This document shows positions 14,695 to 59,667 of a stretch of DNA of 64,000 bases, one piece after another. The notes beneath the pieces are model-generated. The model saw nothing but the letters and a program-made list of their open reading frames with translations. It was not told where the DNA came from and ran no database searches. The first letter of the stretch is position 1, and each line of letters opens with the position of its first letter. The stretch is taken from positions 186,001 through 250,000 of IMG/VR virus record IMGVR_UViG_3300027816_000052; one strand, given 5' to 3'. Made by a program: the position numbers and the translations under genes.

Positions 14695-15551
14695 TGATTG
14701 ATTTAATTACAGTAAGAGAAGAAATAATAGATATTTTAAAAAATAAGTATGAAAGTCAAAAACTTTCTTTTTTAGAGGAAAATCACATTTATTTTATGAA
14801 TGATATTGACGGTAATTTAAGAAATGATTGGCCTTCAGTGTCAAAAGTTCTTAAATATTTTTATGATGAATTTGATGCAGAATCAATTGCTCATAAGAAA
14901 AGTAAGGGTGATTTAGCAGTTAAACAAGCATTATTAGATGAATGGAGTAAATCGGGTGAATTAGCGGTTAATATGGGTTCTAGGGTTCACTATCTTCTAG
15001 AAAAAGAATCGCTTAAAATTTTCAACATTGAAAAAGAAGTTAGACAACCAACATTTGATTGTGATTTTGACCAAATATTAAAAAGTGATGCTATGATTCA
15101 GGGCGGAATTAAATTTCTTAATTTAATGAAAGAGCGAGGCGCTGTTTTATTAGATACCGAGGTCGTTTTAGGTTCGGCTGAATTAGGATATGTTGGTCAA
15201 GCAGACAAAATTTGGCTAATTGAAAATAAAAATAAAGACGGGTTTGGGGTTATTGTTTCTGACTATAAGAGTAATAAACCAAAAAATTTTATACCAAATA
15301 GTTTTACTAAAAAAATGAAATTTCCATTTATCTTTTTAGATGATACAGCATTGGGTCATTACTCGGTTCAATTACCACTATACGGTAAACTTTTTCTAAA
15401 AATGTTAGAGGGTACAAAATACGAAAATTTAAAACTCTACGGCTGTATAATAGTACTACTTAAGGACGATTCAGATTTTGAAGAATTTAGAGTCGGTAAA
15501 GGTGCTATGGATACCGCATTAACTATGGACGTAAAAAAATACCTGAAATAG
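14694..15551 (+). CDS. PD-(D/E)XK exonuclease
   Basis: PSVSKVL, GSRVH, GQADKI, SDYKSNK and HYSVQLPLY motifs. Confidence 0.75.
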   Translation: MIDLITVREEIIDILKNKYESQKLSFLEENHIYFMNDIDGNLRNDWPSVSKVLKYFYDEFDAESIAHKKSKGDLAVKQALLDEWSKSGELAVNMGSRVHYLLEKESLKIFNIEKEVRQPTFDCDFDQILKSDAMIQGGIKFLNLMKERGAVLLDTEVVLGSAELGYVGQADKIWLIENKNKDGFGVIVSDYKSNKPKNFIPNSFTKKMKFPFIFLDDTALGHYSVQLPLYGKLFLKMLEGTKYENLKLYGCIIVLLKDDSDFEEFRVGKGAMDTALTMDVKKYLK

Positions 15552-30731: not shown

Positions 30732-31658
30732 ATGAAAGATTATTATCAAATTTTAGGAGTACCAGAAACAGCATCAGTTGACGAGATAAAAAAATCTTAT
30801 CGTAAAATGAGTAAACAATATCATCCAGATGTAAATCCAAATGGTGCTGATAAATTTAAAGAAATTAGTGAGGCGTATGAGAATTTATCCGATTCAGAAA
30901 AAAGAAACGTGTATGATAATCAAAGGAAAAATCCATTTGGTTTTTCTAGTGGTGCTGGAGATATTAACGATTTATTAAATCATCTATTTAATCAAAATAG
31001 AACCAGAAGACCTTCTGCACCTGAGAAAATTATTACTGTTTCTATCGGTGTTGTTGATTCTTTTTTGGGGATAAATAAACCAATTACATATTTAAGAAAT
31101 ATTGCATGTAATTCTTGTAATGGAAATGGTGGAGAACGAAAAAAATGTTCAGATTGTTCCGGTTCCGGTACCAAACTAAAAAGAACTGGAAACGGATTTT
31201 TTTCACAAACAATCCAAACAATATGTGATACTTGCTCCGGTAATGGATCTACCATTGTTAATCCCTGCTTTAGTTGTTCAGGTAATGGATTTAAAACACA
31301 GACAGATAATCTTAATATGAATTTACCAATTGGTGTTCAAAACGGGTCACTATACAGAGTTCAAGGTAAAGGAGATTTTAAAAATAGTATGTATGGAGAT
31401 TTAATAATTAAAGTTAATATTGAACCTCAAAATAATTTTGAACGTATAGATAATGATCTTGTTTATACTAAAATCTTTACATTAGACGAGTTAAATCTGG
31501 ATAAGATAGAAATACCTCACCCAAGCGGTAATCTAACGATTACGCTACCGGAAACATTCGACACGTCAATTCCTCTAAGAGTTAAGGGTAAGGGTTTTAG
31601 AGGAAGTGGACATCTAGGTGACTTATTGATAAAGAAAGTCGTTAGATTTAAAAAGTAA
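30732..31658 (+). CDS. dnaJ: DnaJ chaperone
   Basis: J domain with HPD, four CxxCxGxG repeats and a C-terminal domain. Confidence 0.93.
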   Translation: MKDYYQILGVPETASVDEIKKSYRKMSKQYHPDVNPNGADKFKEISEAYENLSDSEKRNVYDNQRKNPFGFSSGAGDINDLLNHLFNQNRTRRPSAPEKIITVSIGVVDSFLGINKPITYLRNIACNSCNGNGGERKKCSDCSGSGTKLKRTGNGFFSQTIQTICDTCSGNGSTIVNPCFSCSGNGFKTQTDNLNMNLPIGVQNGSLYRVQGKGDFKNSMYGDLIIKVNIEPQNNFERIDNDLVYTKIFTLDELNLDKIEIPHPSGNLTITLPETFDTSIPLRVKGKGFRGSGHLGDLLIKKVVRFKK

Positions 31659-39007: not shown

Positions 39008-39373
39008 ATGAAAGACACGATAGTTTTGACATTCGTTGAATTACAACAACAATTAAGAATTTTACATTGGCAAACAAAATCTTATGCAAAACATAACGCA
39101 TATGGTAAAACATATGATGAATTAAGTGGTTTGATTGATGACTTTGTTGAAATCTCTATGGGTAAATATGGAAGATTTGAATTAACAGATGGTACAATTG
39201 AGTTGTTTGACATAAAAAATATGTCACTTCAAGACTTTATAGATTCAGCAGTTGAGTTTTTAATTTCGTTAAGTGGTGAATTTTCAGGCGAAACAGACAC
39301 TGACTTATTAAATATAAGAGATGAAATGCTTGGTCAATTTAATAAACTAAAATATCTATTAACATTAGAATAA
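39008..39373 (+). CDS. DUF5856 family ferritin-like protein
   Basis: QLRILHWQT, HxAY...YDEL, DDFVE and KLKYLLTL. Confidence 0.75.
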   Translation: MKDTIVLTFVELQQQLRILHWQTKSYAKHNAYGKTYDELSGLIDDFVEISMGKYGRFELTDGTIELFDIKNMSLQDFIDSAVEFLISLSGEFSGETDTDLLNIRDEMLGQFNKLKYLLTLE

Positions 39374-39720
39374 TGGCTAAAATTATAATAACAGAAAAAC
39401 AATTAATTGATTTAAGAAAATCAATTGTTAATGAAGATGCAACCGGATTAAAACCGGGGGAACATCGTATTTGCAAGGGCGGTTATTCAGAATCTTGCTT
39501 AATGGAAACCGGTAATTTAAAATATAATGTAAAAGGCGATAAACCATATTTTGCATTAATATATAAAGTCGCATCTGGTGACACTATGAGCGGTATTTTA
39601 TCAAAGTTAAATAAAAAGGGTAATTTTATTATTAAGAATCCGATGGAACTCAATACACTTTTAAAGAATGAAAATGATTTAAAACCTAATGATGTTCTTC
39701 TTTTTAATTTTGAGGTTTAA
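39373..39720 (+). CDS. Protein with an N-terminal ITEKQL motif and a C-terminal LysM-like domain
   Basis: YKVASGDTMSGI...LKPNDVL. Confidence 0.55.
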   Translation: MAKIIITEKQLIDLRKSIVNEDATGLKPGEHRICKGGYSESCLMETGNLKYNVKGDKPYFALIYKVASGDTMSGILSKLNKKGNFIIKNPMELNTLLKNENDLKPNDVLLFNFEV

Positions 39721-40258
39721 TCCACATTTTCTTATAATCTTTAGTATTTGAGCAATACATAGCATAATCGTTTACAAGTACTTTACCAGTATTATAAACA
39801 CCACAAACAATATCCCACTTTTTGTATTTATTGTGGAGATAGCGTAATAACTTCATACTAGTACGCACATTATATTCAATATCGGTTTTTAGCTTTTTTC
39901 CGCCAATTGGTTCTTTATTAATAAATTCAGATGTTGCTGGCATAATTTGCATAGGACCAAGAGCACCGGCTTTTGAACCTTGTGCGTGATTATAACCCCA
40001 ATGAAATGGACCCAAATATCTAGTTTCTTTGTATGCTACATTGTATGCGATATATTTTGGGATATTATATTCATCCGAATACTTCTCGATGAAGTAATAC
40101 ATCTTTAAACAATTTGGGGAATTATCTGTTTCCGCTAGATAAAATAAATCACCATCATCTAATGTAGTTTTTTCCTCAGGTTTAATTATGAAAAACATAA
40201 AGATGGTGAAACAAATAATAATATAGACCCAAACATTTAAGTAAAATTTATGGTTCAT
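39704..40258 (-). CDS. Lytic transglycosylase (SLT domain) with an N-terminal TM anchor
   Basis: AYKETRY, GALGPMQIMPAT and YNTG. Confidence 0.85.
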   Translation of the reverse strand: MNHKFYLNVWVYIIICFTIFMFFIIKPEEKTTLDDGDLFYLAETDNSPNCLKMYYFIEKYSDEYNIPKYIAYNVAYKETRYLGPFHWGYNHAQGSKAGALGPMQIMPATSEFINKEPIGGKKLKTDIEYNVRTSMKLLRYLHNKYKKWDIVCGVYNTGKVLVNDYAMYCSNTKDYKKMWIKPQN

Positions 40259-40559
40259 TTTTTGTCATGATTTGGTTTGCATAACTATTGAAAATTGATT
40301 TTCCTACACTGTCTGAGTAAATCACATAATCACCACTAAAGTTATCAATCAAAATCAATCTATTTCCCTCATCTATTGCAATATTAACATCTTTTTTATT
40401 AACATATTTGATTTTTGTTTTTGGTTGAGGAACAATTTTATTGTAATTAATACCGACCAAAAAACCAACTGTGATTCCACCAGCAACCGCAACAACAAAT
40501 AACATATGATTAATAATACGCTTAATGGTTGTGAAAGTTTCTTTGAATTCTAATTTCAT
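40248..40559 (-). CDS. Single-TM protein next to the transglycosylase
   Basis: Hydrophobic MLFVVAVAGGITVGFLVG. Confidence 0.6.
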   Translation of the reverse strand: MKLEFKETFTTIKRIINHMLFVVAVAGGITVGFLVGINYNKIVPQPKTKIKYVNKKDVNIAIDEGNRLILIDNFSGDYVIYSDSVGKSIFNSYANQIMTKNEP

Positions 40560-40590
40560 GTTTCTTAATTTTTTAGGTTAGACCGCAAAA

Positions 40591-40947
40591 TTAAGAAGAT
40601 TTTTTGAAATATGCAACTTTATCACCAACTTTTATATCATGATGCGAACAAGAACCTCCGGGTAGCTCAAGAACTATGTTACCTTGACCTGAATATGTTG
40701 GACAGTCATTTGATTTGCAAGGAGGACAATTTTCATGAATTTTTGATATAGTATCATTTACTATAAATATGATATCAAGATTTACAATGCAATTTTTCAT
40801 CCAAAATGATTGTTCTTCATTTTTGTCCATTATAAATAACATTCCATCAAAACCATTAAATCGTTTACCCATCATACCTTCAGTTCTTCCTTCTACAGAA
40901 GTTTTAAGTATTACGTTAAAGTTTTTGTTATTTATTTTTATTTTCAT
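40591..40947 (-). CDS. DUF192 family protein
   Basis: GMMG, GMLF, FWMKN, LDIIF and VLELPGG. Confidence 0.85.
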   Translation of the reverse strand: MKIKINNKNFNVILKTSVEGRTEGMMGKRFNGFDGMLFIMDKNEEQSFWMKNCIVNLDIIFIVNDTISKIHENCPPCKSNDCPTYSGQGNIVLELPGGSCSHHDIKVGDKVAYFKKSS

Positions 40948-49634: not shown

Positions 49635-49949
49635 ATGTCAGGAGGTTATTTTGATTATAAAAAATATCAACTTAATGATATCATTGATGATATTGAAAGA
49701 GTTTTAAATAGACAAGGAAAAGAAAGACCAAAAGAAGAACGTTGGTGTAGTGATGAATATCTTGAAAAATATCCAGAAGAAAAATATTATCCAACCTATT
49801 CAAAAGAAATTCAAGAAAAATTGCAAGAAGCAATTAAATCATTAACAATTGCAAGAATTTATGTACAAAGAGTTGATTGGTTTTTATCGGGTGATGATGG
49901 CGATGAATCATTCTTGAGAGAATTGTCTGAAGAATTGGATAAGGTATAG
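49635..49949 (+). CDS. Conserved phage hypothetical protein (MSGG family)
   Basis: MSGGYFDY...RVDWFLSGDDG. Confidence 0.65.
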   Translation: MSGGYFDYKKYQLNDIIDDIERVLNRQGKERPKEERWCSDEYLEKYPEEKYYPTYSKEIQEKLQEAIKSLTIARIYVQRVDWFLSGDDGDESFLRELSEELDKV

Positions 49950-49972: not shown

Positions 49973-50236
49973 ATGAGTACTGAAATGAGAAAACTCATAA
50001 ATGAGTTTAATAACATTAACGAATCAAGTTTAAATAGAATATATAGTCATATTCAAAAATATGAATGCGCAATTATAACAGCGTTTAAAGGTAAGTTAAC
50101 TAACTGTAGAACCGAAAATGATAATGAAAAAAGAATATATATTAGACAGAACAAGGATAGAAATAAACTTTTAAAATCAGCTTTATTATTTTTTGGATAT
50201 CAAATTACAAAAGTAAAAGGTACTTATGTTGAATAA
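49973..50236 (+). pseudogene. Probably 3'-truncated late gene (ESSLNRIY...CAIITAF family)
   Basis: The frame stops at KGTYVE* exactly where a half attC-like site begins. Confidence 0.5.
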
Positions 50237-50274
50237 ACCACAAACCCGCCACTTGCATATACACGCTGTTATAA
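50232..50274 (+). repeat. Truncated attC-like site (right arm only)
   Basis: ATAAACCACAAACC...TATACACGCTGTTATAA resembles the right half of the 54977-55069 site. Confidence 0.65.
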
Positions 50275-50364
50275 GCAGGTGCGGTATTATAGCACAGAAC
50301 TTGATTTGAAAGACGAAACCTTTTTCTTTTCTTTTTGTGTGGTGGGAAAATAAAATTTAAAATA

Positions 50365-52338
50365 ATGAATAAAGTATTATTACCAAAAGAAGAAATTACA
50401 CAGAAGTTAGATAGAGATAAACTTACTTTATTGAACGCTTCTATCAAAGATTATGTGAACAACTTGTATGAAAATTCAAATGATGAATACATTATACAAG
50501 ATGGTGAACCATACGCCAATGGAGAATTACATTTGGGACATTTTTTAAACAAAACCTTGAAAGATTTTGTTGTAAAATATTACTTAACAAAAGGTAAGAA
50601 AGTTAGGGTTTCATTTGGTTGGGACTGTCATGGTTTACCCATTGAAAATAAAGCAAAAGAAATGAGTGGTGATTTAATTCAAAATGCTAAATTAGTCGCA
50701 ACCAAATATTGTGATATTCAAAATAAAACTCTTGAACTTTTCGGGATTTATCCAACTGAAGGTAGGTTTAAAACTATGGATATTGATTTTATAGAAAGAG
50801 AATTATATATATACCACCAACTACTAAATGCGGGTCTAATTCTTAAAAAGAATAAGCCTACTTGGTACTCACCAACATTAAAAACAGTATTGGCTAACTC
50901 AGAAATTGAATATAAAAAAATAGAAGATGAATCTTTGTATTTTCTATTCAACTCTGATAGTTTTAAATTACTTGTTTGGACAACAACAGAATGGACTGTA
51001 AACGGAAATCAGGCAGTATGTTTAAGTAATAATATAAAATATGTTAAAACTGTTGACAATATTATTTGTAGTGAAAGTTTTGCTATTGAAAATAATTTAG
51101 ATTATGATTTGTTTGATGTGAGTAATATTAAGTCATATCATAACCACAATGGAGATTTATGTCCAATTATTTATGATGACTACGTTTCAGATGATAAAAC
51201 AGGTATAGTACATCTTTGCGGTGGACACGGTGATGAAGATTATCGAATTTTAATGGATAATAACATAACCCCCAAAAATGTGTGCGATAAAATCGGCTTA
51301 TTAAAACACATAGAAGATTTTAAAATTGATGAAAAGTTTGTATATAAACGTGAAATTTACACACACGATTATCCAATTGATTGGCGTGAAGGGAATAAGG
51401 TGTATAAAGTATTAACGGAACAAACGTATCTTGATTTTGATTTAAACAAAATAAAGACTTGTTTAAAAGAAATAAAGTTATCATCAAAAGACAGAAATCG
51501 TTTATCAACGACAATATTTTCACGCAAAGATTGGTGTATTTCAAGACAAAGAAAATGGGGTGTTAAAATACCTAATAGTAATGATATATTGGATGTTTGG
51601 TTTGATAGTGGTTCTACATTTATGATGTATGATAAACCTGCCGATATATACATTGAAGGTTCAGACCAACACAGAGGGTGGTTTCAAAGTTCGATTATAT
51701 TAGCATCAATGATTGGTCGAGTACCAACAAAAAGAATAATAACACACGGATTTATTGTTGATAACACATTAGAAAAACTATCAAAATCAAAAGGTAATGG
51801 CGGAAGTTTGGAAAAGCTGTATGAAACATATAACCCTGATGTATTAAGACTATGGGTTTTACTGTCAGATTTTAAAAACGATATTGTCTTTTCGGAAGAT
51901 TCATTAAAAAACTCTGGTAAACAATATTTTAAAATAAGAAACTTTCTCCGTTATTTATTTAATAATCTATATATATATGATTATGATGAAACAAAAGTTG
52001 ATGAAAATATTTTTTTTAAAGTAAAAGAGTTGGAAAATAAATTTGATTTACTTGTCAATGAATTTGATTTGAATAAAGCAGTAAGGGGTTTTGTTGAATT
52101 TATAAACTATTATTCATCTTTGTTGACGGAGGATATTAAAAATGAATTTTATGAATCTGACACAAATTCCAATATGAGAATTAAATATGAAACAGAGTTT
52201 TACTATGTTTTAAAACACTTAAATAAACTACTTTTTTCGATTTTACCATTTCTTTCTATGGAAATAAAAAAAGCGTGGGAAGAAAAAAGAAAAGAAAAAG
52301 ATTTACATGTAGGGACTATATTTGGAAACGAGATGTAG
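50365..52338 (+). CDS. ileS: Minimal isoleucyl-tRNA synthetase (cassette 1)
   Basis: DGEPYANGELHLGH, GWDCHGLPIE, WTTTEWT, DWCISRQR, DVWFDSG, EGSDQHRGWFQS and KLSKS. Likely start at 50365 (657 aa). Confidence 0.9.
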   Translation: MNKVLLPKEEITQKLDRDKLTLLNASIKDYVNNLYENSNDEYIIQDGEPYANGELHLGHFLNKTLKDFVVKYYLTKGKKVRVSFGWDCHGLPIENKAKEMSGDLIQNAKLVATKYCDIQNKTLELFGIYPTEGRFKTMDIDFIERELYIYHQLLNAGLILKKNKPTWYSPTLKTVLANSEIEYKKIEDESLYFLFNSDSFKLLVWTTTEWTVNGNQAVCLSNNIKYVKTVDNIICSESFAIENNLDYDLFDVSNIKSYHNHNGDLCPIIYDDYVSDDKTGIVHLCGGHGDEDYRILMDNNITPKNVCDKIGLLKHIEDFKIDEKFVYKREIYTHDYPIDWREGNKVYKVLTEQTYLDFDLNKIKTCLKEIKLSSKDRNRLSTTIFSRKDWCISRQRKWGVKIPNSNDILDVWFDSGSTFMMYDKPADIYIEGSDQHRGWFQSSIILASMIGRVPTKRIITHGFIVDNTLEKLSKSKGNGGSLEKLYETYNPDVLRLWVLLSDFKNDIVFSEDSLKNSGKQYFKIRNFLRYLFNNLYIYDYDETKVDENIFFKVKELENKFDLLVNEFDLNKAVRGFVEFINYYSSLLTEDIKNEFYESDTNSNMRIKYETEFYYVLKHLNKLLFSILPFLSMEIKKAWEEKRKEKDLHVGTIFGNEM

Positions 52339-52345
52339 CACTTGC

Positions 52346-52465
52346 TTATAACGGTTGCAAATATAAAACGTTTTAAACTAAACTTAAATTGAAAAACAGT
52401 ATATAAATATAAACCAACAATAAATTTGGAACGCTGAAATAAATGTTTTATATTTGTTGTTATAA
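52346..52465 (+). repeat. attC-like hairpin (120 bp)
   Basis: TTATAAC-GGTTG-CAAATATAAAAC...GTTTTATATTTG-TT-GTTATAA. Confidence 0.85.
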
Positions 52466-52485
52466 ACACGTTAAATTATTTTATT

Positions 52486-52764
52486 ATGAAAACATATAAT
52501 GTAAAGTATGATGTTGGACAAGAAGTATATATACTTTTATCCAAAAAAATATTTAAAAGTAAAATTGAAAAGATTAGAATTGTTCATGGGGTACCTTATA
52601 TCAAAGGCGAAACAATGGAACAAATGGATGGAATTGAAATTGATTACTTGGTTGTAGTTAATGAACAATTCTATCCTTCAGGTGGACATTTATCTAGTTA
52701 TGATTGGTATAAACAGGATGATATTTTTTTGGATAAAGATGAACTGTTGCGGAAAATAATTTAA
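52486..52764 (+). CDS. Cassette 2 hypothetical protein
   Basis: ORF between the 52459 GTT and the 52775 AAC. Confidence 0.7.
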   Translation: MKTYNVKYDVGQEVYILLSKKIFKSKIEKIRIVHGVPYIKGETMEQMDGIEIDYLVVVNEQFYPSGGHLSSYDWYKQDDIFLDKDELLRKII

Positions 52765-52768
52765 TTGT

Positions 52769-52822
52769 TTATAACGTCTGATGATAAACAATCGTTTTAA
52801 TGTGTTTTATTTGCTGTTATAA
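52769..52822 (+). repeat. attC-like hairpin (54 bp)
   Basis: TTATAAC-GTCTGATGATAAACAATCG...GTTATAA; near-copy of 57404-57457. Confidence 0.8.
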
Positions 52823-52846
52823 GTATGTAATTTACAATTTATACCT

Positions 52847-53092
52847 ATGAAAAAAACGAAAAGAAAAATACATATTGGAAATGACCTATGGTTTTATTGG
52901 GTTGGTTCTGGTAGATGGGGTGAGGTAACTCATGTAACGATATGTTCACCAGATGAACAATATTATAAAATAGATGCAAGTGATGTTGCAAGTAGTGAAA
53001 TGTATGTTGGTGCGGAAGGGTCATTTCCAACACAAATATTACCGTCAAAAGTTAAAGAATATATTGAAAATAAAATAATAAATAAATTTTAA
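52847..53092 (+). CDS. Cassette 3 hypothetical protein
   Basis: ORF between hairpins. Confidence 0.7.
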   Translation: MKKTKRKIHIGNDLWFYWVGSGRWGEVTHVTICSPDEQYYKIDASDVASSEMYVGAEGSFPTQILPSKVKEYIENKIINKF

Positions 53093-53100
53093 ATTATTAC

Positions 53101-53195
53101 TTATAACGGTTGGGTGTATGAGAAGGTTTGCTTAGATGAACTTTCAAATTAACCACTGAACTTTATAGCAAACTTTCTTATACACCTTGTTATGT
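53101..53195 (+). repeat. attC-like hairpin (95 bp)
   Basis: GGTGTATGAGAAGGTTTGCT / AGCAAACTTTCTTATACACC stem. Confidence 0.88.
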
Positions 53196-53263
53196 GTAGG
53201 TGTGGTTAATTAAGGTAGAATGTTAAATAGTAGAAATGAACAAAAATTTTAAAAGAAAAATAT

Positions 53264-53674
53264 ATGAATTATAAACAAAAAATTACAACTATCAATTATT
53301 TTGAAAAGGTGGTTAAAATTTCTCTAACAAGAGAAGAGTGGAATTCATCTGGAACTTGGGTAGAGTCAATGATGAAAAAAGGTTGTGAAAGACTGAGTAA
53401 GGATTGGTTTGAAGATTTACATCACTTAGTTATGCGACCAATAAGTGACGAAATAAACTTTTCTGGTAAAAACTATACTTATGATGTGGATATAACATTT
53501 GATATACCAAGAGAATTACTGAGAATGTTTGTATATTCAATCGGTCAAATTGCTTATGATTTTGATGTTAAAGGTATAACTTCGGTTACTGCTCAAAATA
53601 TAGTGGGAAAAATAAACAAACAATTAAAAGAACAACTACCAAATGATGATAAATGGTTTCATTATGGATTTTGA
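53264..53674 (+). CDS. Cassette 4 hypothetical protein
   Basis: ORF between hairpins. Confidence 0.7.
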   Translation: MNYKQKITTINYFEKVVKISLTREEWNSSGTWVESMMKKGCERLSKDWFEDLHHLVMRPISDEINFSGKNYTYDVDITFDIPRELLRMFVYSIGQIAYDFDVKGITSVTAQNIVGKINKQLKEQLPNDDKWFHYGF

Positions 53675-53732
53675 TTTTTCTTTTAAAATTTTCAACCGAA
53701 ATGTTGATTAGAACGATGAACGGAACGCTTAC

Positions 53733-54208
53733 ACATAACGTATATCGGCTAAACGCAGTATTTAAAAACTTTTGCGAGGGAAATAATTAATCAATTAAAT
53801 AATAATAATTAAAAACAAAAAGTAAAATGGAAATCAAAACAAAATTTGACGTAAACAATTTGGTGAAAAGAAAATTCGACACCAATTCAAAGAACCAGAT
53901 GAGTGCTTTGGAAGTAATGGAAGTGATTGCACAAACTTGCTATGCAGGAACGCAGGTATTTTATTTGTGCAAACATGTAATTGCTCAAAAGGAATTTGTA
54001 GAAAAGTATTCTGAAAAAGGAGAATTTACTTGGGTGATTGCTCACAGTATTTCACAAGAAGAAAATCAGGCAGGATGGAGAAAATACCGTGAAGATGAAT
54101 TGATAGAAGCACCAAAAGAAGTGATTGACATTATACTTGGTAATTCTTAATTGTTCAATTGTGCGGTGGGAAAGTTTTTAAATATTGTCGTTTTAGCCGT
54201 TGTTATGC
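53733..54208 (+). repeat. attC-like hairpin with a gene in its loop (476 bp)
   Basis: CGGCTAAACGCAGTATTTAAAAACTTT pairs with AAAGTTTTTAAATATTGTCGTTTTAGCCG. Confidence 0.8.
53827..54150 (+). CDS. Hypothetical protein inside the attC-like loop
   Basis: 107-aa ORF with an A-rich leader. Confidence 0.7.
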   Translation: MEIKTKFDVNNLVKRKFDTNSKNQMSALEVMEVIAQTCYAGTQVFYLCKHVIAQKEFVEKYSEKGEFTWVIAHSISQEENQAGWRKYREDELIEAPKEVIDIILGNS

Positions 54209-54273
54209 GAAGGTGTGGCAACTCCAAAATTTCAAATTATAGACAAAACTTTCTTGCCACACTTTTGCATAAC
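54202..54273 (+). mobile_element. Empty cassette body (cassette 5, 72 bp)
   Basis: GTTATGCGAAGGTGTGGCAA...TTGCCACACTTTTGCATAAC with no ORF between. Confidence 0.8.
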
Positions 54274-54351
54274 GGTTGTAAATATGAGAAGTAAATTTTA
54301 CCTATAAAAATTAGATAAATCAAAATTTATTTCTTATATTTGTTGTTATAA
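54267..54351 (+). repeat. attC-like hairpin (85 bp)
   Basis: AAATATGAGAAGTAAATTTT / AAAATTTATTTCTTATATTT stem. Confidence 0.85.
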
Positions 54352-54382
54352 GTATGTAAAACAAACTAAATAATAATTAAAT

Positions 54383-54613
54383 ATGAAAATTGAAGGTCAA
54401 ATTACGCTAGATGGTATATTATATACACTGTTTATTTTATTCTGTTTATTTTTAACAATAGGTAGTTCTATTAGTGGGTGGTGGTATTTATCACACTTTG
54501 GATTCAGTGTAAAACAATTTTTGGTAAATATTTTAGTTTCGTCTTCAACTTTATTTATGATCTGGATGATTTTCACTAAAATATTTATTATAAAAATAAA
54601 CAGAATAAAGTAG
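54383..54613 (+). CDS. Cassette 6 small membrane protein (2 TM)
   Basis: Two hydrophobic helices. Confidence 0.7.
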   Translation: MKIEGQITLDGILYTLFILFCLFLTIGSSISGWWYLSHFGFSVKQFLVNILVSSSTLFMIWMIFTKIFIIKINRIK

Positions 54614-54626
54614 TTTGTTTTATTAC

Positions 54627-54757
54627 TTATAACGGTTGAGTATAACCGAAGGTGGGGATTAGAAGTGCCGAACCCTGACTTACCTACAAAAGTAAATTAG
54701 AAGCACAATATCTGAATGTTGGAACTACACCCCACTTTTGGTTATACTTTGTTAGGT
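54627..54757 (+). repeat. attC-like hairpin (131 bp)
   Basis: AGTATAACCGAAGGTGGGG / CCCCACTTTTGGTTATACT stem. Confidence 0.88.
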
Positions 54758-54777
54758 GTATGTAAATTTTACGGATT

Positions 54778-54966
54778 ATGAAAGATATACAACTGTTAAT
54801 TGATATGAAAGTTTCTTTAGGTAGGGAAACATTATTATTTCAGATACTTGGTAAGTATGGTGATAAAATACCAATGGAACTTCAAGAAGAACTACGAAAA
54901 TTGGCAGAAGAAGAAAGAAACTTTGGTGAAATGAAGAAACGAACTTTGAAGGGTGTGTTGGAGTAA
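54778..54966 (+). CDS. Cassette 7 hypothetical protein
   Basis: 62-aa ORF between hairpins. Confidence 0.65.
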   Translation: MKDIQLLIDMKVSLGRETLLFQILGKYGDKIPMELQEELRKLAEEERNFGEMKKRTLKGVLE

Positions 54967-54976
54967 AATTTATTAC

Positions 54977-55069
54977 ACCTAACGGTTGGGTGTATGAAAC
55001 GTAGCCACGCACAATACTTAATATAAACCACAGACCTTAATTGGCTATGTTTTATACACGATGTTAGCA
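54977..55069 (+). repeat. attC-like hairpin (93 bp)
   Basis: GTGTATGAAACGTAGCCA / TGGCTATGTTTTATACAC stem. Confidence 0.88.
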
Positions 55070-55175
55070 GTAGTACGGATTTAAACTACAAATGCTCATT
55101 CGGAGAACTGAACCTTTTTCTTTTCTTTTTTGTGGGTTGGACAAAATAAATTTGAAAAATTTAAAAATAAATAAT

Positions 55176-55409
55176 ATGAAATTAGAAACAATTGTAAAAG
55201 TTACACCAGATGGTGGAGTTGAAATTCCTTCTGATATGAAAGTTGGAACTGGATTGATGAATATGGTAAAAGAATTACGTGATAATGAATGGAGAACATT
55301 TGAACATCACGATAATTGGATTAAAAACGAACATTATCCAAATCCAACATTTGAACAACAATTTGATACAGGTAATGCTTATAAAGAAATGTTAAAAACT
55401 AAAATTTAA
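55176..55409 (+). CDS. Cassette 8 ORF a
   Basis: Likely start at 55176; the track's start at 55092 lies in the cassette flank. Confidence 0.6.
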   Translation: MKLETIVKVTPDGGVEIPSDMKVGTGLMNMVKELRDNEWRTFEHHDNWIKNEHYPNPTFEQQFDTGNAYKEMLKTKI

Positions 55410-55413
55410 AACT

Positions 55414-56013
55414 ATGATGAAAATTGAAGCAAAAAAAGACGGTAAAGGAAACATTGTAATATCGGAAGATTCCTTTGAAATGATACTGGCTTGTTTAGAT
55501 AATCAAAAATTTGTTGGTGAACAGCCACAAAATGGTGATTCGCTTTCGGTAGGCGAAGACAACTATTGGAAAGGACAAGAAGATATTCAAAACACTATTG
55601 ACCATTATAATAGAGAATGTAGAAAAATATTACATCAAAAATATGTTTTAAGAACAGAATCTGATGGTTATTTTCTTGCTAAAAAATATGAACATCAAAC
55701 AGAAGATACTGAATGGACTGGTGAAGATGTTGGATTAGTGTATGAACTATTCAAAGATACAAGAATAATTTATAATGAAACAAGAGATTTATTACCATTA
55801 GATGGTAGTGAAGAAATTAAGGAAGGAAGTACTCCAATTGGTAAAACAAAAGATGGGTGGATTGCAGTTGAACAAGAATCAAGACCTTGGTTAATTGAAA
55901 GAGCATTGGGATATGATGGTGATTATTTAACAATTTCTGAAGATGGCAGTAAGAATAGACCTTGGAAACAAGATGAAATTCGAAAAATTATAAACATATT
56001 TAATAATAAATAA
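55414..56013 (+). CDS. Cassette 8 ORF b
   Basis: 199-aa ORF. Confidence 0.7.
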   Translation: MMKIEAKKDGKGNIVISEDSFEMILACLDNQKFVGEQPQNGDSLSVGEDNYWKGQEDIQNTIDHYNRECRKILHQKYVLRTESDGYFLAKKYEHQTEDTEWTGEDVGLVYELFKDTRIIYNETRDLLPLDGSEEIKEGSTPIGKTKDGWIAVEQESRPWLIERALGYDGDYLTISEDGSKNRPWKQDEIRKIINIFNNK

Positions 56014-56014
56014 A

Positions 56015-56422
56015 ATGGGAATATTTGATTGTTTAATAGATAAAGACAATGGAAAACCAAAATCTGATATGGAATATATTTACAGATTAGATATGGTTTG
56101 GATACCTAACAAACTTGAAAGTAAACCAATTAAAATTGGAACGATAATGAATAATGTTATTCAACGAGATAATGGCAGTTATGAATTTACTTGTAAAGAA
56201 ACTGGTGAAAGATTACAAGCAACTTATTCTTGGGCTTTGGCTGAAAACACACCAGAAAATGTTGAAAGAATAAAAATATATGATGATGAATATTTAAAAT
56301 TCAAAGAATACGAAAGAAAAATAAATTCTTTGAGAAATAATATTATTACTCTTAAAGAGCGTGGAGAAAAAAGAAAAGAAAAAGATATTGCAGATGAAAC
56401 TCAAATCGGAGAACAAATGTAG
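56015..56422 (+). CDS. Cassette 8 ORF c
   Basis: 135 aa; the C-terminus reads through the cassette 3' flank. Confidence 0.7.
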   Translation: MGIFDCLIDKDNGKPKSDMEYIYRLDMVWIPNKLESKPIKIGTIMNNVIQRDNGSYEFTCKETGERLQATYSWALAENTPENVERIKIYDDEYLKFKEYERKINSLRNNIITLKERGEKRKEKDIADETQIGEQM

Positions 56423-56428
56423 TATTAC

Positions 56429-56487
56429 ACATAACGGTTCGGCGGGTTGCCGTTGTGCATTCAATAACGGCAACCCGACTGTTATGC
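56429..56487 (+). repeat. attC-like hairpin (59 bp)
   Basis: CGGGTTGCCGTT / AACGGCAACCCG perfect stem. Confidence 0.88.
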
Positions 56488-56527
56488 GGGGTCATTCTTT
56501 TTCACTCGGTAAAAAGCAAAAGGTACA

Positions 56528-56830
56528 ATGGCAAAAAGGAAGTTAGGCCCATCGAGCGGCAAGTGCTCCAAGTGCGGAGGTCACATCAGCATCAATCCAC
56601 CAAGACCGTGCCGCCGCTGCTCAGGCGAAAAGCCTCAGGCGAGCTCGGAAAAGAAAGAGCGCGTGTTCACCGAGAGCGAGGTGAAGGCGATGGTGCGAGA
56701 GATTCTCGCAGAACAGGAACGACTGCATATAAGCGATGGATCCGGAGGACACGATATTGTGTGGGCGGTCGGGATCGGAGAGGTCGAGGCGGTGTTTAAA
56801 GCGCACGGCATTGTTCTCGATCCCGCATAA
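56528..56830 (+). CDS. Cassette 9 GC-rich zinc-ribbon protein
   Basis: CSKC...CRRC; the stop codon TAA lies inside the GCATAAC core. Confidence 0.7.
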   Translation: MAKRKLGPSSGKCSKCGGHISINPPRPCRRCSGEKPQASSEKKERVFTESEVKAMVREILAEQERLHISDGSGGHDIVWAVGIGEVEAVFKAHGIVLDPA

Positions 56831-56954
56831 CGGTTGACGGTATGAAAAGTTGGGGATTAAAAGATATAAACTTTCGCACCGATACAATGATAATTAATAG
56901 TACAAACCTTCGGGAACGCACACACGCCCCAATTTTTTATACCGTGTGTTATGC
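56825..56954 (+). repeat. attC-like hairpin (130 bp)
   Basis: ACGGTATGAAAAGTTGGGG / CCCCAATTTTTTATACCGT stem. Confidence 0.88.
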
Positions 56955-56975
56955 CCCGTTTTTATCCAATTTTTT

Positions 56976-57398
56976 ATGTTACAAGACGAATTAGCATTAC
57001 AATATAAATACAAAAAACTTCCATCAGAATTATCTGACAAGGTAAGAAACCAATATTTGTCTGAAATACCAAAATGTTTGAATATCAATGGTGATTCTGA
57101 ATTTGAGTTAAAAACAGCAAACGGTACAATAATTTCAAAAGGATATGAAAGAATTGTAATTGGAGATTATGGAGCGTTTATTGAATTTAACAGAAATCAA
57201 GTTATTGACGAAAATATTTGTATTCAAAAGGGGCAAGAATATAGAATTAACGATGAAAAATATAGTAAGAATGTGAAATATTTTTGGTTGACTGCAAAAG
57301 ATTCATCGTGTATAAAGATATATTTACAACAGAAAACGGTATCATACGCAGATTATAAACCAAATATGTATTACGTGTCTCCATTTGAGGTTTTTTAA
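56976..57398 (+). CDS. Cassette 10 hypothetical protein
   Basis: GYERIVIGDYGAFIEF; likely start at 56976. Confidence 0.7.
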   Translation: MLQDELALQYKYKKLPSELSDKVRNQYLSEIPKCLNINGDSEFELKTANGTIISKGYERIVIGDYGAFIEFNRNQVIDENICIQKGQEYRINDEKYSKNVKYFWLTAKDSSCIKIYLQQKTVSYADYKPNMYYVSPFEVF

Positions 57399-57403
57399 AT
57401 GGG

Positions 57404-57457
57404 GAATAACGTCCGATGATAAACAATCGTTTTAATGTTGTTTATCATTTGTTATGT
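57404..57457 (+). repeat. attC-like hairpin (54 bp)
   Basis: ATGATAAACA / TGTTTATCAT stem. Confidence 0.85.
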
Positions 57458-57536
57458 GTAGGTGTGGATTATTAAGGTGGAATGTTTAATCGGAGAACTG
57501 AACAAAAATTTTAAAAGAAAAATTAATATATAGATT

Positions 57537-57761
57537 ATGGGAAACATAGTTAAAAAATTTGAAAACTTTAAAGATGGGTTATACGTCACATGTAAAAACG
57601 CACCAGAAGATAATTACCAACTTCATAATAAAAAGGATTATTTGGTTATTAAATATGATAACCAACCGTATGGTGTTGGACGAGTAACTATATTTAACCC
57701 TTCAAGTAGAAAGGAAGAAACATATCCTAAAACTATGTTTAGTGAACCATTTAACAAATAA
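57537..57761 (+). CDS. Cassette 11 hypothetical protein
   Basis: 74-aa ORF. Confidence 0.65.
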   Translation: MGNIVKKFENFKDGLYVTCKNAPEDNYQLHNKKDYLVIKYDNQPYGVGRVTIFNPSSRKEETYPKTMFSEPFNK

Positions 57762-57819
57762 TTTTTCTTTTAAAATTTTAAACATAGATGTTGATTAGAA
57801 CGATGGGTGGAACACTTAC

Positions 57820-57952
57820 ACATAACGTTTCGCAGCTTGGCGAGGTGCGGGATTTACAGCACTAAAGACGATTAGAATTACAAATTTTTAAATAAAAAAC
57901 AATATGTCAAACGAAGTACAAAACCCCGCATCTTGCCAAACTGCTGTTATAT
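57820..57952 (+). repeat. attC-like hairpin (133 bp) containing the start codon of the next gene
   Basis: GCAGCTTGGCGAGGTGCGGG / CCCGCATCTTGCCAAACTGC stem; ATG at 57904. Confidence 0.88.
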
Positions 57953-58185
57953 GCCGCCTTTTTGATTTGGGAAGGAAAGGGTTAACATGGGATTGGTCAA
58001 AATTGGAACTGAAAAAACAATACTTTATCAGTCGTGAAGATGTTTTGAATATGAATATGCTTTGGCAACTTGCACAAGGTGGTATAACTGAACAAGCACA
58101 ATCTTTGAATGCAGAAGTATTGATTTGGGAAGATGTCATAAAAAACGGATGGTACTTGTTGCTGAGACCGCAAGGTGGCATATAA
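57904..58185 (+). CDS. Cassette 12 protein starting within the upstream hairpin
   Basis: The first ~15 codons (MSNEVQNPASCQTAV) are hairpin sequence. Confidence 0.65.
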   Translation: MSNEVQNPASCQTAVICRLFDLGRKGLTWDWSKLELKKQYFISREDVLNMNMLWQLAQGGITEQAQSLNAEVLIWEDVIKNGWYLLLRPQGGI

Positions 58186-58313
58186 CGGTTTGCGTATTGC
58201 TGACGTTGCCAATTTGAAACACAAATGTTGAATTAAAAACAAAAAAATAAATATGAAAATCAGAGTTGAAGTTAAAGACGAAGCTGGCAATGTTCAGCAA
58301 TACGTTGTTAGGC
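58180..58313 (+). repeat. attC-like hairpin (134 bp) containing the start codon of the next gene
   Basis: CGTATTGCTGACGTTGCCA / TGGCAATGTTCAGCAATACG stem; ATG at 58253. Confidence 0.88.
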
Positions 58314-58471
58314 GCAGTTACTTGGTCAAATTTGTTGACCCGAAGAAAGAGTATCCTGTTACCTACACAATTAAACACGATGGCACAAGAGTAAATGAAC
58401 CTGCAATGCTCAAAGGCGAAGATTTAACCGAAAATCAAATTGCACAACTTTTCTCGAAGGGTTTGTTGTAA
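58253..58471 (+). CDS. Cassette 13 protein starting within the upstream hairpin
   Basis: The first ~19 codons (MKIRVEVKDEAGNVQQYVV) are hairpin sequence. Confidence 0.65.
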   Translation: MKIRVEVKDEAGNVQQYVVRRSYLVKFVDPKKEYPVTYTIKHDGTRVNEPAMLKGEDLTENQIAQLFSKGLL

Positions 58472-58475
58472 TTGC

Positions 58476-58570
58476 GCCTAACGATTGGGTGTATATGTAG
58501 TTTTTTATTTGGAAATGTCAAAACTTATTCGTACCTTTGTAAAAAAAATTACATATACACCTTGTTATGT
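58476..58570 (+). repeat. attC-like hairpin (95 bp) with a promoter in its loop
   Basis: GGTGTATATGTAGTTTTTT / AAAAAATTACATATACACC stem. Confidence 0.88.
58508..58539 (+). promoter_or_regulatory. Bacteroidota housekeeping-type promoter inside the attC-like loop
   Basis: TTTG-N20-TACCTTTG. Confidence 0.75.
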
Positions 58571-58601
58571 ATAGTTTATTCACAAATTAAAATAAAAGTT
58601 T

Positions 58602-58808
58602 ATGAAACAACCAAAAATTAAAATAACCGACATTCACGGTAAAGACTGGGGTATTAAAAAAGTAAAAACACTTCATTGGAATTTGGACGGAAAATTAAAC
58701 ACAATTCAAGTTGATTTTTCTGGAACTATGGATATGTATGATTTAGATGATGAAGGCGTTTTTACTAATCCACATGGTAATATGAAAGGCGTTATCATTT
58801 GGGAATAA
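58602..58808 (+). CDS. Cassette 14 hypothetical protein
   Basis: 68-aa ORF. Confidence 0.65.
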   Translation: MKQPKIKITDIHGKDWGIKKVKTLHWNLDGKLNTIQVDFSGTMDMYDLDDEGVFTNPHGNMKGVIIWE

Positions 58809-58813
58809 ATTAT

Positions 58814-58866
58814 ACATAACTAGTATATATAAGTAAGTATAATCTAACCACTTAAAAATAAAGGAC
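58814..58866 (+). other. Candidate attI-like half-site between the last cassette and the recombinase
   Basis: ACATAAC is followed by TAGTATATATAAGTAAG rather than by a hairpin; no partner GTT arm. Confidence 0.5.
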
Positions 58867-59667
58867 TTGAATAATAAAATTATTAAGATTTGTGAAGAAA
58901 AGTTTATATATTTAAACTATTCACCAAGAACAAAAGATAATTATCTTTCACATATAAAAAATTTCTTAAATCACATTGGTAGTAAACAAGTAATACATTG
59001 TAATGCTCAAGATTTTCAATCCTATTTAGATAATTATAAATTCACTTCAACAGCACAACAAAACCAAATCATTAACGCAATAAGATTTCTCTACAAATTT
59101 GGTCTTAATAAAAAATATGATAAAATATCGTTTAAAAGACCTAAATCTGAGAAGAAACTACCAAAAGTAATTGATTCAAATTCAATCATTGATAAATTAA
59201 ATAAGATTGATAATCTCAAACACAAAGCAATTCTCACCTTAACTTTTTCAGTTGGTCTACGAGTCTCAGAAATAATTAATCTTAAAATAGAGGATATTGA
59301 TTCCAAGCGAATGTTAATCCACATTAAGAACGCAAAAGGAAGAAAAGATAGAGTTGTTCCATTATCTCAAAATGTATTAAGACTATTAAGAACTTATTAT
59401 AAAAATTATATCCCAAAGGAATATCTCTTCAATGGACAAAACAGTACTAAATATTCAATAGGTAGTTGTCAGAAAATATACAAAAAATATATTGAATCTG
59501 ATGGACATATACACACACTTAGACACAGTTTTGCAACATCCTTATTAGAAAATGGAACAGATTTAAGAATTATTCAAAAAATTCTTGGTCATTCAAATGT
59601 TAAAACCACAGAAATATACACACACGTTTCAAATCAAATTTTGAACAAAATTAATTTGCCAGTTTGA
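58867..59667 (+). CDS. Compact tyrosine recombinase (integron-integrase-like, lacking the IntI insertion)
   Basis: SAM-like N-terminus YSPRTKDNY, GLRVSE (R), AKGRKDR (K), HTLRHSFAT (HxxR), LGH and TEIYTH (Y). TTG start. Confidence 0.92.
   Translation: MNNKIIKICEEKFIYLNYSPRTKDNYLSHIKNFLNHIGSKQVIHCNAQDFQSYLDNYKFTSTAQQNQIINAIRFLYKFGLNKKYDKISFKRPKSEKKLPKVIDSNSIIDKLNKIDNLKHKAILTLTFSVGLRVSEIINLKIEDIDSKRMLIHIKNAKGRKDRVVPLSQNVLRLLRTYYKNYIPKEYLFNGQNSTKYSIGSCQKIYKKYIESDGHIHTLRHSFATSLLENGTDLRIIQKILGHSNVKTTEIYTHVSNQILNKINLPV

Follow-up and report, generated by a model that had tools for sequence, protein, structure and literature searches.

An integron-like array of 14 gene cassettes in a large AT-rich phage, with hairpin sites marked by invariant G·T wobble pairs

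In integrons, the IntI integrase acts on attC sites, imperfect hairpins with R''/L''/L'/R' boxes and conserved AAC/GTT triplets, and on an attI site that lies next to the recombinase gene (Nivina et al. 2016, PMC5027507). Cassettes form tandem, promoter-poor arrays and come from foreign genomes, crossover takes place in AAC, the first bases of each integrated cassette complete its own site in the circle, and one strand folds preferentially. Here we describe a locus with these features in a 64,000-nt window (positions 186,001 to 250,000 of IMG/VR record IMGVR_UViG_3300027816_000052; coordinates below are those of the window), in which 14 units lie next to a small Xer-type tyrosine recombinase. 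In contrast to integrons, this recombinase lacks the IntI-specific insertion and scores below the IntI and Xer model cut-offs; Cury et al. 2016 class such enzymes near attC sites as "not IntI". The R stem is 13-30 bp instead of about 7, the arms carry a sequence motif, and strand asymmetry would be encoded by three G·T wobbles and a 3-4-nt bulge on the AAC arm rather than by extrahelical bases on the other arm. The folding strand is the coding strand, so the hairpin precedes its ORF, and the recombinase gene is co-directional with and downstream of the array.

Other systems share parts of this organization. In CTX-phi and other IMEX elements a folded single strand imitates a dif-like core, with two arms and a short center, for a Xer-family enzyme, with one strand exchange. 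Those elements use host XerC/XerD to integrate a whole phage genome at chromosomal dif, whereas here a single phage-encoded recombinase would serve many small cassettes in an array. Among the one-recombinase Xer/dif systems (archaeal XerA, XerH, XerS), XerA is the best structural and profile match to our enzyme (4a8e at 3.9e-37; NCBIfam XerA model at 195 bits, below the family cut-off of 220), and the core is likewise an inverted 10-11-bp arm pair around about 6 nt; yet the sites described here are folded and multi-copy, flank genes and carry wobble pairs, and we found no evidence of a chromosome-dimer role. Clusters of attC sites without integrase (CALIN) have been reported in virulent phages (Qi et al. 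2023, PMC9892861), and Polaribacter phage P12002L, listed there with a CALIN, contains five units with the same GTT...G / T...AAC ends. That work, in which two sites were tested, treated the sites as ordinary integron attC sites recognized by IntI1 and did not describe a dedicated phage recombinase, long arrays, the extended R stem or the G·T pairs. Promoter-early stem-loop (PeSL) cassettes of T4-type phages and pdif modules of Acinetobacter plasmids are also small gene modules bounded by repeated stem-loops or Xer sites in plastic genome regions. PeSLs are not known to have a dedicated recombinase, pdif modules use duplex XerC/D sites in alternating orientation, and neither is known to have cognate end pairing or invariant wobbles.

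A preliminary description of the array, made from the sequence alone, reported that the two ends of each unit are complementary well beyond a 7-bp core and that a G at position 11 of the 5' end always faces a T at the 3' end. This observation holds for all 14 units (50268-58820), and the three pairs of end sequences given as examples are exact. Each unit body runs from the G of the R' GTT to the C of the R'' AAC. Positions 1-10 of the 5' end are complementary to the last 10 bases of the 3' end except in unit 5, where position 8 is itself G·T, unit 8, with positions 5-7 mismatched, and unit 10, with position 6 mismatched. The G·T follows, and 2-15 further pairs then give total stems of 13-30 bp. 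As noted in the preliminary description, units 2, 3, 6 and 7 have one extra base (C or T) before the G. With base frequencies of roughly 0.19 G and 0.32 T, a G/T at one fixed position has a probability of about 0.06, and its occurrence in 14 of 14 units a probability of about 1e-17.

All units lie on the + strand. Unit 1 (50268-52352; G 50278 faces T 52342) carries a class I aminoacyl-tRNA-synthetase-like ORF (50335-52338). Unit 2 (52459-52775; bulged C 52469, G 52470 faces T 52765) has a stem of about 25 bp, and is followed by unit 3 (52816-53107; bulged T 52826, G 52827 faces T 53097) and unit 4 (53189-53739; G 53199 faces T 53729). Unit 5 (54202-54273; G 54212 faces T 54263) is an empty 72-bp body that is a 20-bp stem with a loop. 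Unit 6 (54345-54633; bulged T 54355, G 54356 faces T 54623) and unit 7 (54751-54983; bulged T 54761, G 54762 faces T 54973) precede unit 8 (55063-56435; G 55073 faces T 56425), which has three ORFs and the weakest stem. Unit 9 (56481-56831; G 56491 faces T 56821) is a foreign GC-rich body (54.7% GC). The array continues with unit 10 (56948-57410; G 56958 faces T 57400), unit 11 (57451-57826; G 57461 faces T 57816), unit 12 (57946-58186; G 57956 faces T 58176), unit 13 (58307-58482; G 58317 faces T 58472) and the integrase-proximal unit 14 (58564-58820; G 58574 faces T 58810).

The units are separated by 13 hairpins, each comprising an attC L box plus loop. A second G·T, in the L stem, is formed in the hairpins between units 1 and 2 (52353-52458; G 52370 faces T 52444), 3 and 4 (53108-53188; G 53125, T 53174), 5 and 6 (54274-54344; G 54291, T 54330), 6 and 7 (54634-54750; G 54651, T 54736), 7 and 8 (54984-55062; G 55001, T 55048), 9 and 10 (56832-56947; G 56849, T 56933), 11 and 12 (57827-57945; G 57845, T 57931) and 13 and 14 (58483-58563; G 58500, T 58549). 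The hairpin between units 2 and 3 (52776-52815) belongs to a 40-nt family that is also present between units 10 and 11 (57411-57450), where T 57436 faces C 57428 followed by G, the bulged form. The remaining hairpins lie between units 4 and 5 (53740-54201), with a 107-aa ORF (53827-54150) inside the loop, between units 8 and 9 (56436-56480), and between units 12 and 13 (58187-58306). In the window, only 8-10 of 13 hairpins show the L-stem G·T in the standard register. ORFs start in hairpin loops and cross R', as do ORF 57904-58185 from the hairpin between units 11 and 12 and ORF 58253-58471 from that between units 12 and 13, but only one weak 61-aa overlapping ORF (56361-56546) crosses R''. 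The left, integrase-distal end of the array (50249-50267) is an L'-type half arm, with T at -15, TATA at -10 to -7 and then T before GTT, but has no L'' partner; the only other match to the expected partner (3 mismatches) is the L'' arm of the hairpin between units 13 and 14, which is not a partner for this site.

To determine whether the wobble is conserved, we searched 81 sequences using seeds restricted to positions 1-10 and 12-16, and thus blind to position 11. Upstream of the recombinase genes 241 of 375 candidates were G/T, as compared to 11 of 159 downstream. G-C was seen only twice and A-T 15 times, at noise level, and all apparent in-array exceptions were register mis-calls in T runs that are really G·T. 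The same G·T occurs in about 260 distinct units from 57 related phage loci, in Bacteroidota chromosomes and in Polaribacter phage P12002L, and we found no true exception. Random mismatch types at this position in homologous arrays, which had been named beforehand as an outcome that would count against a role for the wobble, were therefore not observed. Positions 5-9 and 12-15 show all four Watson-Crick pair types, so the arms covary while the G·T stays fixed. In the L stem, the T at 15 nt 5' of GTT, the mirror position, is 95-100% conserved; it faces G in 69 of 104 hairpins, and C followed by G in 23 more. A third G·T, between the base after AAC and the base before GTT, is present in 97 of 104 junctions. 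The L and R arms share one 10-bp motif (nTATnnGnAG), with a mean column correlation of 0.79 in register against -0.31 to 0.16 when shifted.

Pair counts and folding energies point to the + strand as the folding strand. G·T/T·G pairs outnumber A·C/C·A pairs by 109 to 13 in the L stems under symmetric scoring and by 27 to 4 in the R stems. The mean folding energy is -24.7 kcal/mol for the + strand and -20.5 kcal/mol for the - strand, with + more stable in 12 of 13 sites, and cognate R pairing gives -24.7 against -15.5 for neighbor pairing. Because the + strand is also the coding strand and the G-rich strand, RNA-level selection or strand-biased C-to-T mutation could add to the excess of variable wobble pairs, but neither could produce the invariance.

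Comparison of arrays revealed that the GTT...AAC body, called the cassette body in the preliminary description, is not the mobile unit. In 11 of 11 shared bodies the upstream hairpin is also shared, while the downstream hairpin differs in 9 of 11, and identity starts and stops at TAAC. Seven HSPs span hairpin plus body, and none spans body plus downstream hairpin. Many hairpins are repeat families, so some of these cases, such as the group of phage locus L004, are weaker than they look. The GC-rich composition of cassette 9 is shared with its upstream hairpin (57.8% GC) only and not with the hairpin that follows (38.8%), and its relative in 52%-GC contigs has the identical upstream hairpin and a different downstream one. 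The cassette thus runs from AAC to AAC, the hairpin that completes the site is the upstream one, and the crossover is in AAC, not in GTT.

The array ends in an attI-like site (58818-58866), in which the last AAC is followed by the conserved TAGTATATATA motif (family consensus TAT(T/A)ATATATA), 46 nt before the recombinase start. The motif is conserved in 60 distinct loci, although the register of the attI L arm is uncertain. The same cassette is terminal in three loci (L017, L018 and L052) but internal in L004. The adjacent gene (58867-59667) encodes a 266-aa tyrosine recombinase of Xer/XerA type with intact R-K-H-R-H-Y catalytic motifs.

We favor, with reasonable though not full confidence, a model in which the complementary unit ends are the two halves of the extended R box of an attC-type recombination hairpin in an integron-like system run by the Xer-type recombinase. 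A cassette comprises C, a 4-5-nt spacer, a hairpin (L'', loop, L'), T, and then GTT...body...TAA. When the cassette is a circle, or is looped out in single-stranded DNA, its own R'' end would pair with its own R' end and stack on the upstream hairpin. The folded + strand then shows two inverted copies of the arm motif, separated by 6 nt on the L'-R' side and 9-10 nt on the AAC side, which leaves a 3-4-nt bulge and a dif-like 10-6-10 core. Each arm ends in a G·T wobble, with the G on the strand that runs 5' to 3' away from the center and sometimes with one bulged base before it; the third G·T (AAC-G over T-GTT) lies next to the presumed scissile AA^C. This architecture, its conservation, the + strand preference, the AAC crossover, the attI next to the recombinase, and cassette exchange between genomes of 29% and 52% GC are established by our sequence analysis. 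By contrast, binding and cleavage of AA^C on the folded + strand by the recombinase, exchange with double-stranded attI, and resolution by replication as in integrons are inferred from sequence and by analogy, as is the existence of cassette circles. A role of the wobble pairs as the strand and structure selector is likewise an inference. In this view, pairing the conserved T with G rather than A keeps the helix in the + strand, turns every such position into an A·C mismatch in the - strand fold, and leaves the L'-TTG-R' junction, otherwise a perfect 10-6-10 duplex site, with only one good arm in duplex DNA. The analogy with IntI strand choice is not exact, as the extra bases sit on the AAC (presumed cleaved) arm, whereas in canonical attC sites the extrahelical bases are on the opposite arm (PMC5027507).

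The interpretation in the preliminary description is only partly supported by these data. It proposed a larger single-stranded structure, a hairpin plus cassette-end stem or a four-way junction, formed on the + strand or its RNA, with the wobble as a recognition determinant. A larger folded single-stranded site made of the two unit ends and a neighboring hairpin, and selection of the + strand to fold, are supported, and the idea of a recognition determinant gains support from the mirror-image and core-proximal G·T pairs. Its statement that canonical sites need only core complementarity agrees with Nivina et al. 2016. In contrast, no four-way junction is required, as in the excised circle the structure is an ordinary attC-type hairpin of R stem, 3-4-nt bulge and L stem, and an RNA-level role has no specific support.

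We considered whether the G and T could instead be independent sequence-specific contacts in duplex half-sites of a classical double-stranded Xer-type reaction, facing each other in a fold only incidentally and with no single-stranded intermediate involved. The XerA-like recombinase lacks the insertion that adapts IntI to folded sites, the arms resemble dif half-sites, and the L'-TTG-R' junction is a 10-6-10 duplex site. However, the crossover maps to the AAC junction, whose duplex form has a 9-10-bp center, and not to the 10-6-10 junction; the arms of each unit covary across up to 2 kb, which is only expected if they pair; wobble pairs are tolerated about 8:1 over A·C; and duplex AAC junctions of different cassettes share only about 5-7 bp. 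We regard this reading as unlikely. Similarly doubtful is a model in which the stems act in mRNA as G·U pairs, with end-to-end pairing of each transcript and intergenic hairpins serving processing, stability or translation control and mobility a separate matter. All genes are on the + strand, G·U is a standard RNA pair and the wobble excess is on the coding strand, but no Rfam family matches the elements and the hairpins are not terminator-like (1 found against 3.1 expected). Moreover, the same elements delimit the units that move between genomes and end in a conserved site next to a recombinase, an empty 72-bp unit and a gene inside a hairpin loop keep the sites, and both arms carry a protein-type inverted motif with dyad symmetry.

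The terminal inverted repeats of 13-30 bp and the MITE-like empty unit 5 might suggest that each GTT...AAC body is an independent transposon or MITE-like element mobilized by some transposase, with the hairpins as unrelated repeats. This is very unlikely, because homology between arrays breaks from AAC to AAC and not at the inverted-repeat ends, so that the upstream hairpin travels with the body; no transposase is present, there are no target-site duplications, and the units are strictly tandem, co-oriented and next to a tyrosine recombinase in 57 loci. Finally, a functionless origin of the G·T by strand-biased deamination (C to T) of originally perfect stems would fit the C-poor + strand, with its positive GC skew along the window, but is effectively refuted by the invariant position, orientation and identity of the pair in about 260 units whose arms otherwise differ, and by its mirror copy in the L stem.

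The window is an AT-rich (about 29% GC) genome segment with nearly all genes on the + strand, and it encodes an SbcC/gp46-like nuclease subunit and RNA ligases. IMG/VR viral contigs of 84–256 kb contain the same sequence, so it is best read as part of a large phage. A megablast search of 20 kb of the window against isolate phages found nothing, and the window contains no tRNAs. Between 50268 and 58820 lie 14 units that begin with GTT(A/G) and end with (C/T)AAC; they are separated by imperfect hairpins of 40–462 nt, each starting right after AAC and ending right before GTT. Directly after the last AAC, 46 nt on, starts a 266-aa tyrosine recombinase (58867–59667) with Pfam Phage_integrase and SAM_4 domains.

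All 14 units have complementary ends, and the three examples in the preliminary description are exact. After 10 pairs, with exceptions in units 5, 8 and 10, a G in the 5' end faces a T in the 3' end, and 2–15 further pairs follow; in units 2, 3, 6 and 7 one bulged base precedes the G. To determine whether this holds in relatives, we examined viral contigs of up to 362 kb that carry at least 80 relatives of the recombinase (55–100% identity). A greedy arm-extension detector missed the weaker units, and a hairpin finder that allowed G·T was swamped by chance matches in this AT-rich DNA. We therefore seeded only on positions 1–10 and 12–16, so that the search was blind to position 11, and used the regions upstream and downstream of the recombinase as controls. 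Of 534 distinct candidate end pairs, 252 had G facing T, and every other combination occurred 22 times or fewer. Upstream of the recombinase genes the figure is 241 of 375, whereas downstream it is 11 of 159. The apparent in-array exceptions are register mis-calls in T runs and are G·T as well; G-C occurs twice and A-T 15 times, at background level. Positions 5–9 and 12–15 use all four Watson-Crick pair types, so the arms covary while the G·T stays fixed. Random mismatch types in homologous arrays, which had been named beforehand as grounds for rejecting the idea, were therefore not what we observed. The pairing reported in the preliminary description is confirmed and generalises beyond the window.

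A mirror-image G·T is present in the intergenic hairpin. Position-specific counts show that the T lying 15 nt 5' of the G of GTT, in the 3' arm of the hairpin, is 95–100% conserved. In 104 hairpins it faces a G in 69, and in 23 more it faces a C followed by a G, the same optional one-base bulge seen in the unit ends. The base after AAC is G and the base before GTT is T in 97 of 104 junctions, making a third G·T next to the C-G pair of the cores. Read outward from the centre, the R arm (R' strand) and the L arm (L'' strand) have the same consensus, nTAT(R)nGnA-G-T, with a mean column correlation of 0.79 in register and at most 0.16 when shifted. The two arms are 10 bp each and are separated by 6 nt on the L'-R' strand and by 9–10 nt on the AAC strand, leaving a 3–4-nt bulge. 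This is the layout of a dif-type core for a tyrosine recombinase dimer, in which each monomer would see a wobble pair at the outer end of its arm, in the same orientation.

To ask which strand folds, we compared wobble and A·C pairs and computed folding energies. The cognate arms are not contiguous in the integrated state, and pairs were counted by script. With scoring that treats G·T and A·C alike, the hairpin stems contain 109 G·T/T·G against 13 A·C/C·A, not counting the invariant position; the unit-end stems, selected only by identity, contain 27 against 4. With DNA energy parameters, the site reconstituted for a circular cassette (own R'' end, upstream hairpin, own R' end) has a mean of -24.7 kcal/mol on the + strand and -20.5 kcal/mol on the - strand, and the + strand is more stable in 12 of 13 cases. 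The integrated, non-cognate R pairing gives only -15.5 kcal/mol. The + strand fold is R stem, 3-nt bulge, then L stem; the four-way junction that the preliminary description had proposed as one possibility is not needed once the circle form is taken into account.

BLAST among the arrays shows that the hairpins are repeat families, whereas the bodies are mostly unique. Eleven bodies are shared between different arrays at 93–100% identity; the upstream hairpin is shared in all 11, and the downstream one differs in 9. Alignments show identity starting at the (T)AAC of the preceding unit and ending at the unit's own TAAC(G). Seven HSPs span hairpin plus body, and none spans body plus downstream hairpin. 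Base composition agrees: the GC-rich unit 9 (54.7% GC) shares its composition with its upstream hairpin (57.8%) and not with its downstream one (38.8%), so that cassette 9 (56436–56831) is 55–58% GC in a 29% GC genome. A relative of its protein sits on 52%-GC metagenome contigs, where it is preceded by the identical hairpin and followed by a different one, in the same kind of array. The closest relatives of cassette 9 (51–72% protein identity; loci L162–L165) lie on such contigs next to a T4 Y07B-like gene, which implies cassette traffic across very different genomes. ORF positions also agree. ORFs 57904–58185 and 58253–58471 begin inside hairpin loops and cross the GTT site, whereas only one weak 61-aa overlapping ORF (56361–56546) crosses an AAC site. 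These two ORFs and ORF 56946–57398 start inside or at the end of the upstream hairpin and read through L' and R' into the body, and in units 9 and 12 the stop codon is the TAA of the R'' core. The mobile cassette therefore runs from AAC to AAC, hairpin first, then body. A tyrosine recombinase bound to the R arm of the folded + strand would cut exactly there (AA^C), at the arm/centre boundary, which is the position used in integrons (PMC5027507); for the present system this placement rests on comparative evidence only.

After the last AAC, 60 distinct loci share the motif TAT(T/A)ATATATA, which lies 32–57 nt before the recombinase start. One cassette is terminal in two of the related arrays (L017 and L018) and another in a third (L052), and both are internal in a fourth (L004), which fits insertion at this attI-like site. 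The distal end of the array (50249–50267) keeps only an L'-type half arm, and a search for its L'' partner found none. The junction motif TAACGGTTG occurs exactly only inside the array, plus once by chance. The gene just left of the array (49635–49949) is homologous to the gene that ends in an AAC site at the array start in L004 and L017; in the window an extra ORF (49973–50236) separates it from the L' half site.

The recombinase does not reach the curated score of the XerA, XerC, XerD or integron-integrase family. Its best profile is archaeal XerA (XerA_Arch, 195 bits against a cut-off of 220), and the XerC (161 against 335), XerD (159 against 330) and integron-integrase (TIGR02249, 161 against 265) models all score far below their cut-offs. 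The closest solved structure is Pyrococcus XerA 4a8e. Against VchIntIA (2a3v) the alignment splits in two: query residues 17–174 match chain residues 17–177 and query residues 209–257 match chain residues 260–308, so about 48 residues of the IntI-specific insertion (intI_Cterm / I2 helix) are absent. The catalytic motifs are present, namely GLRVSE, KGRKDR, HTLRHSFAT and the GHS...Y segment. More than 7,600 relatives exist on contigs of up to 566 kb, and their sources name them only XerD or integrase.

Of the viral loci, 57 have at least one such unit upstream of the recombinase and 35 have three or more. The same units and hairpins lie next to 37–52%-identical recombinases in Bacteroidota chromosomes, for example in Maribacter sp. 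R77961 (L126, 3669–7156), Niabella ginsengisoli (L158, 2277–7591), Flavobacterium and Bacteroidales. These chromosomal arrays, which also include loci L087, L116, L103, L130 and L132, have the same end structure and the G·T at position 11; in some (L103, L116, L101) the array is on the strand opposite to the recombinase gene. Five dispersed units of this family are carried by the isolated virulent Polaribacter phage P12002L, which lacks any integrase (14622–15197 on the + strand; 30952–31120, 39242–39518, 40047–40154 and 40552–40764 on the - strand). Some of these lie near its DNA methyltransferase genes, and they overlap the region where a CALIN was reported by Qi et al. 2023, who listed this phage as carrying a cluster of attC sites (PMC9892861).

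The analysis establishes the architecture of the sites, its conservation, the strand preference, the cassette boundaries and the horizontal movement of cassettes. How the system works can only be inferred, by analogy with integrons: the recombinase would bind the folded + strand of a cassette's site, cut AA^C, and exchange that strand with duplex attI or another folded site, with replication then resolving the junction. In this view the long cognate R stem gives the circle, or a looped-out cassette in single-stranded DNA, a much better site than the integrated neighbour pairing does. That the G·T pairs act as the selector is likewise an inference from sequence alone. The T would be the conserved partner, since the duplex attI R arm also has T at that place, and pairing it with G would keep the + strand helix while making all three positions A·C mismatches in the - strand fold. 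It would also prevent the duplex L'-TTG-R' junction, otherwise a perfect 10-6-10 site, from having two good arms. The preliminary interpretation, a larger single-stranded structure formed on the + strand or its RNA with the wobble as a recognition determinant, is partly supported.

Several alternatives fit less well. Classical duplex Xer recombination is contradicted by the crossover position and by the long-range covariation, and a transposon or MITE reading by the AAC-to-AAC boundaries of the shared segments. Mutational bias cannot give invariance. A role at the RNA level is not excluded as an additional layer, but it has no specific support: Rfam gave no match at E <= 0.1, and the hairpins are not terminator-like. 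Sigma-70 promoter-like sites are not enriched. Several L' arms (52440–52465, 54328–54350 and other L'-R' junctions) read TAtaTTTG just before TT-GTT, which resembles the Bacteroidota -7 promoter element TAnnTTTG; since the hairpin precedes the ORF, the site might double as a cassette promoter.

Measured against the integron as defined by IntegronFinder and Mazel, the system shares an imperfect hairpin site with R and L boxes, conserved AAC/GTT and unpaired features that make the two strands different, although here the asymmetric features are of a different kind (G·T wobbles and a bulge on the AAC arm). It also shares a crossover that maps to the AAC triplet of the favoured folding strand, and an attI-like site next to the recombinase gene. 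It departs from the integron in three defining features. The recombinase lacks the IntI insertion, and Cury et al. 2016 explicitly class recombinases without the insertion near attC sites as not IntI. The 3–4 extra bases lie directly 3' of AAC on the same arm, whereas canonical extrahelical bases lie near L'' on the arm opposite the cleaved AAC (PMC5027507). Finally, intI is canonically divergent from the array, with cassette ORFs read away from attI from a Pc promoter, but here the recombinase is co-directional and downstream of the array, the ORFs read toward attI, and the hairpin precedes each ORF. With respect to Xer/dif systems, the sites are multi-copy, folded and flank genes, in contrast to a single duplex dif site used for dimer resolution. 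IMEX elements of the CTX-phi type use host XerC/D and integrate at chromosomal dif; the present element encodes its own recombinase. Literature searches on integron-like phage arrays, phage integrons, jumbo phages with attC and Xer, Bacteroidota cassette arrays, wobble pairs in attC and Xer-like enzymes lacking the additional domain found no description of this system or of a G·T rule, although coverage was incomplete and prior description cannot be excluded.

It is possible, if somewhat less likely than not, that these arrays represent a second, IntI-independent lineage of integron. In it, a minimal Xer-type recombinase, widespread in Bacteroidota chromosomes and in their large phages, would capture and shuffle cassettes through folded coding-strand hairpins whose strand and structure specificity is written in three invariant G·T wobble pairs instead of extrahelical bases, and the system would exchange genes between phages and genomes of very different base composition. 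If this is correct, integron-type gene capture is not tied to the IntI insertion, the very feature used to define and find integrons. A plain Xer-like enzyme would handle folded single-stranded sites using a different and very simple asymmetry code, wobble pairs that exist only in one strand's fold, which would give a directly testable answer to how a tyrosine recombinase tells a folded strand from its complement and from duplex DNA. The related recombinases would also mark a large unannotated cassette pool through which large phages and Bacteroidota could trade genes. Current integron-finding tools that require the IntI domain would not report these arrays as complete integrons.

Cassette 1 carries a 667-aa class I aminoacyl-tRNA-synthetase-like protein (50335–52338; Pfam tRNA-synt_1, 1.1e-65, with an anticodon-binding domain), an unusual cassette gene for a phage. 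At 53740–54273, a 107-aa ORF (53827–54150) lies inside the loop of hairpin 4->5 and the body that follows (unit 5, 54202–54273) is an empty 72-bp stem-loop, so that in this cassette the cargo sits in the hairpin loop and not between R' and R''. Units 4 (53189–53290 / 53675–53739) and 11 (57451–57540 / 57762–57826), and units 1 (50268–50345 / 52270–52352) and 8 (55063–55150 / 56350–56435), share conserved 5' (about 85 nt) and 3' (about 70 nt) ends that are mutually complementary (for example AAAATTTTAAAAGAAAA with TTTTCTTTTAAAATTTT), although their ORFs are unrelated. In units 1 and 8 the conserved 3' end is coding and gives both proteins a similar ...KRKEKD... tail.
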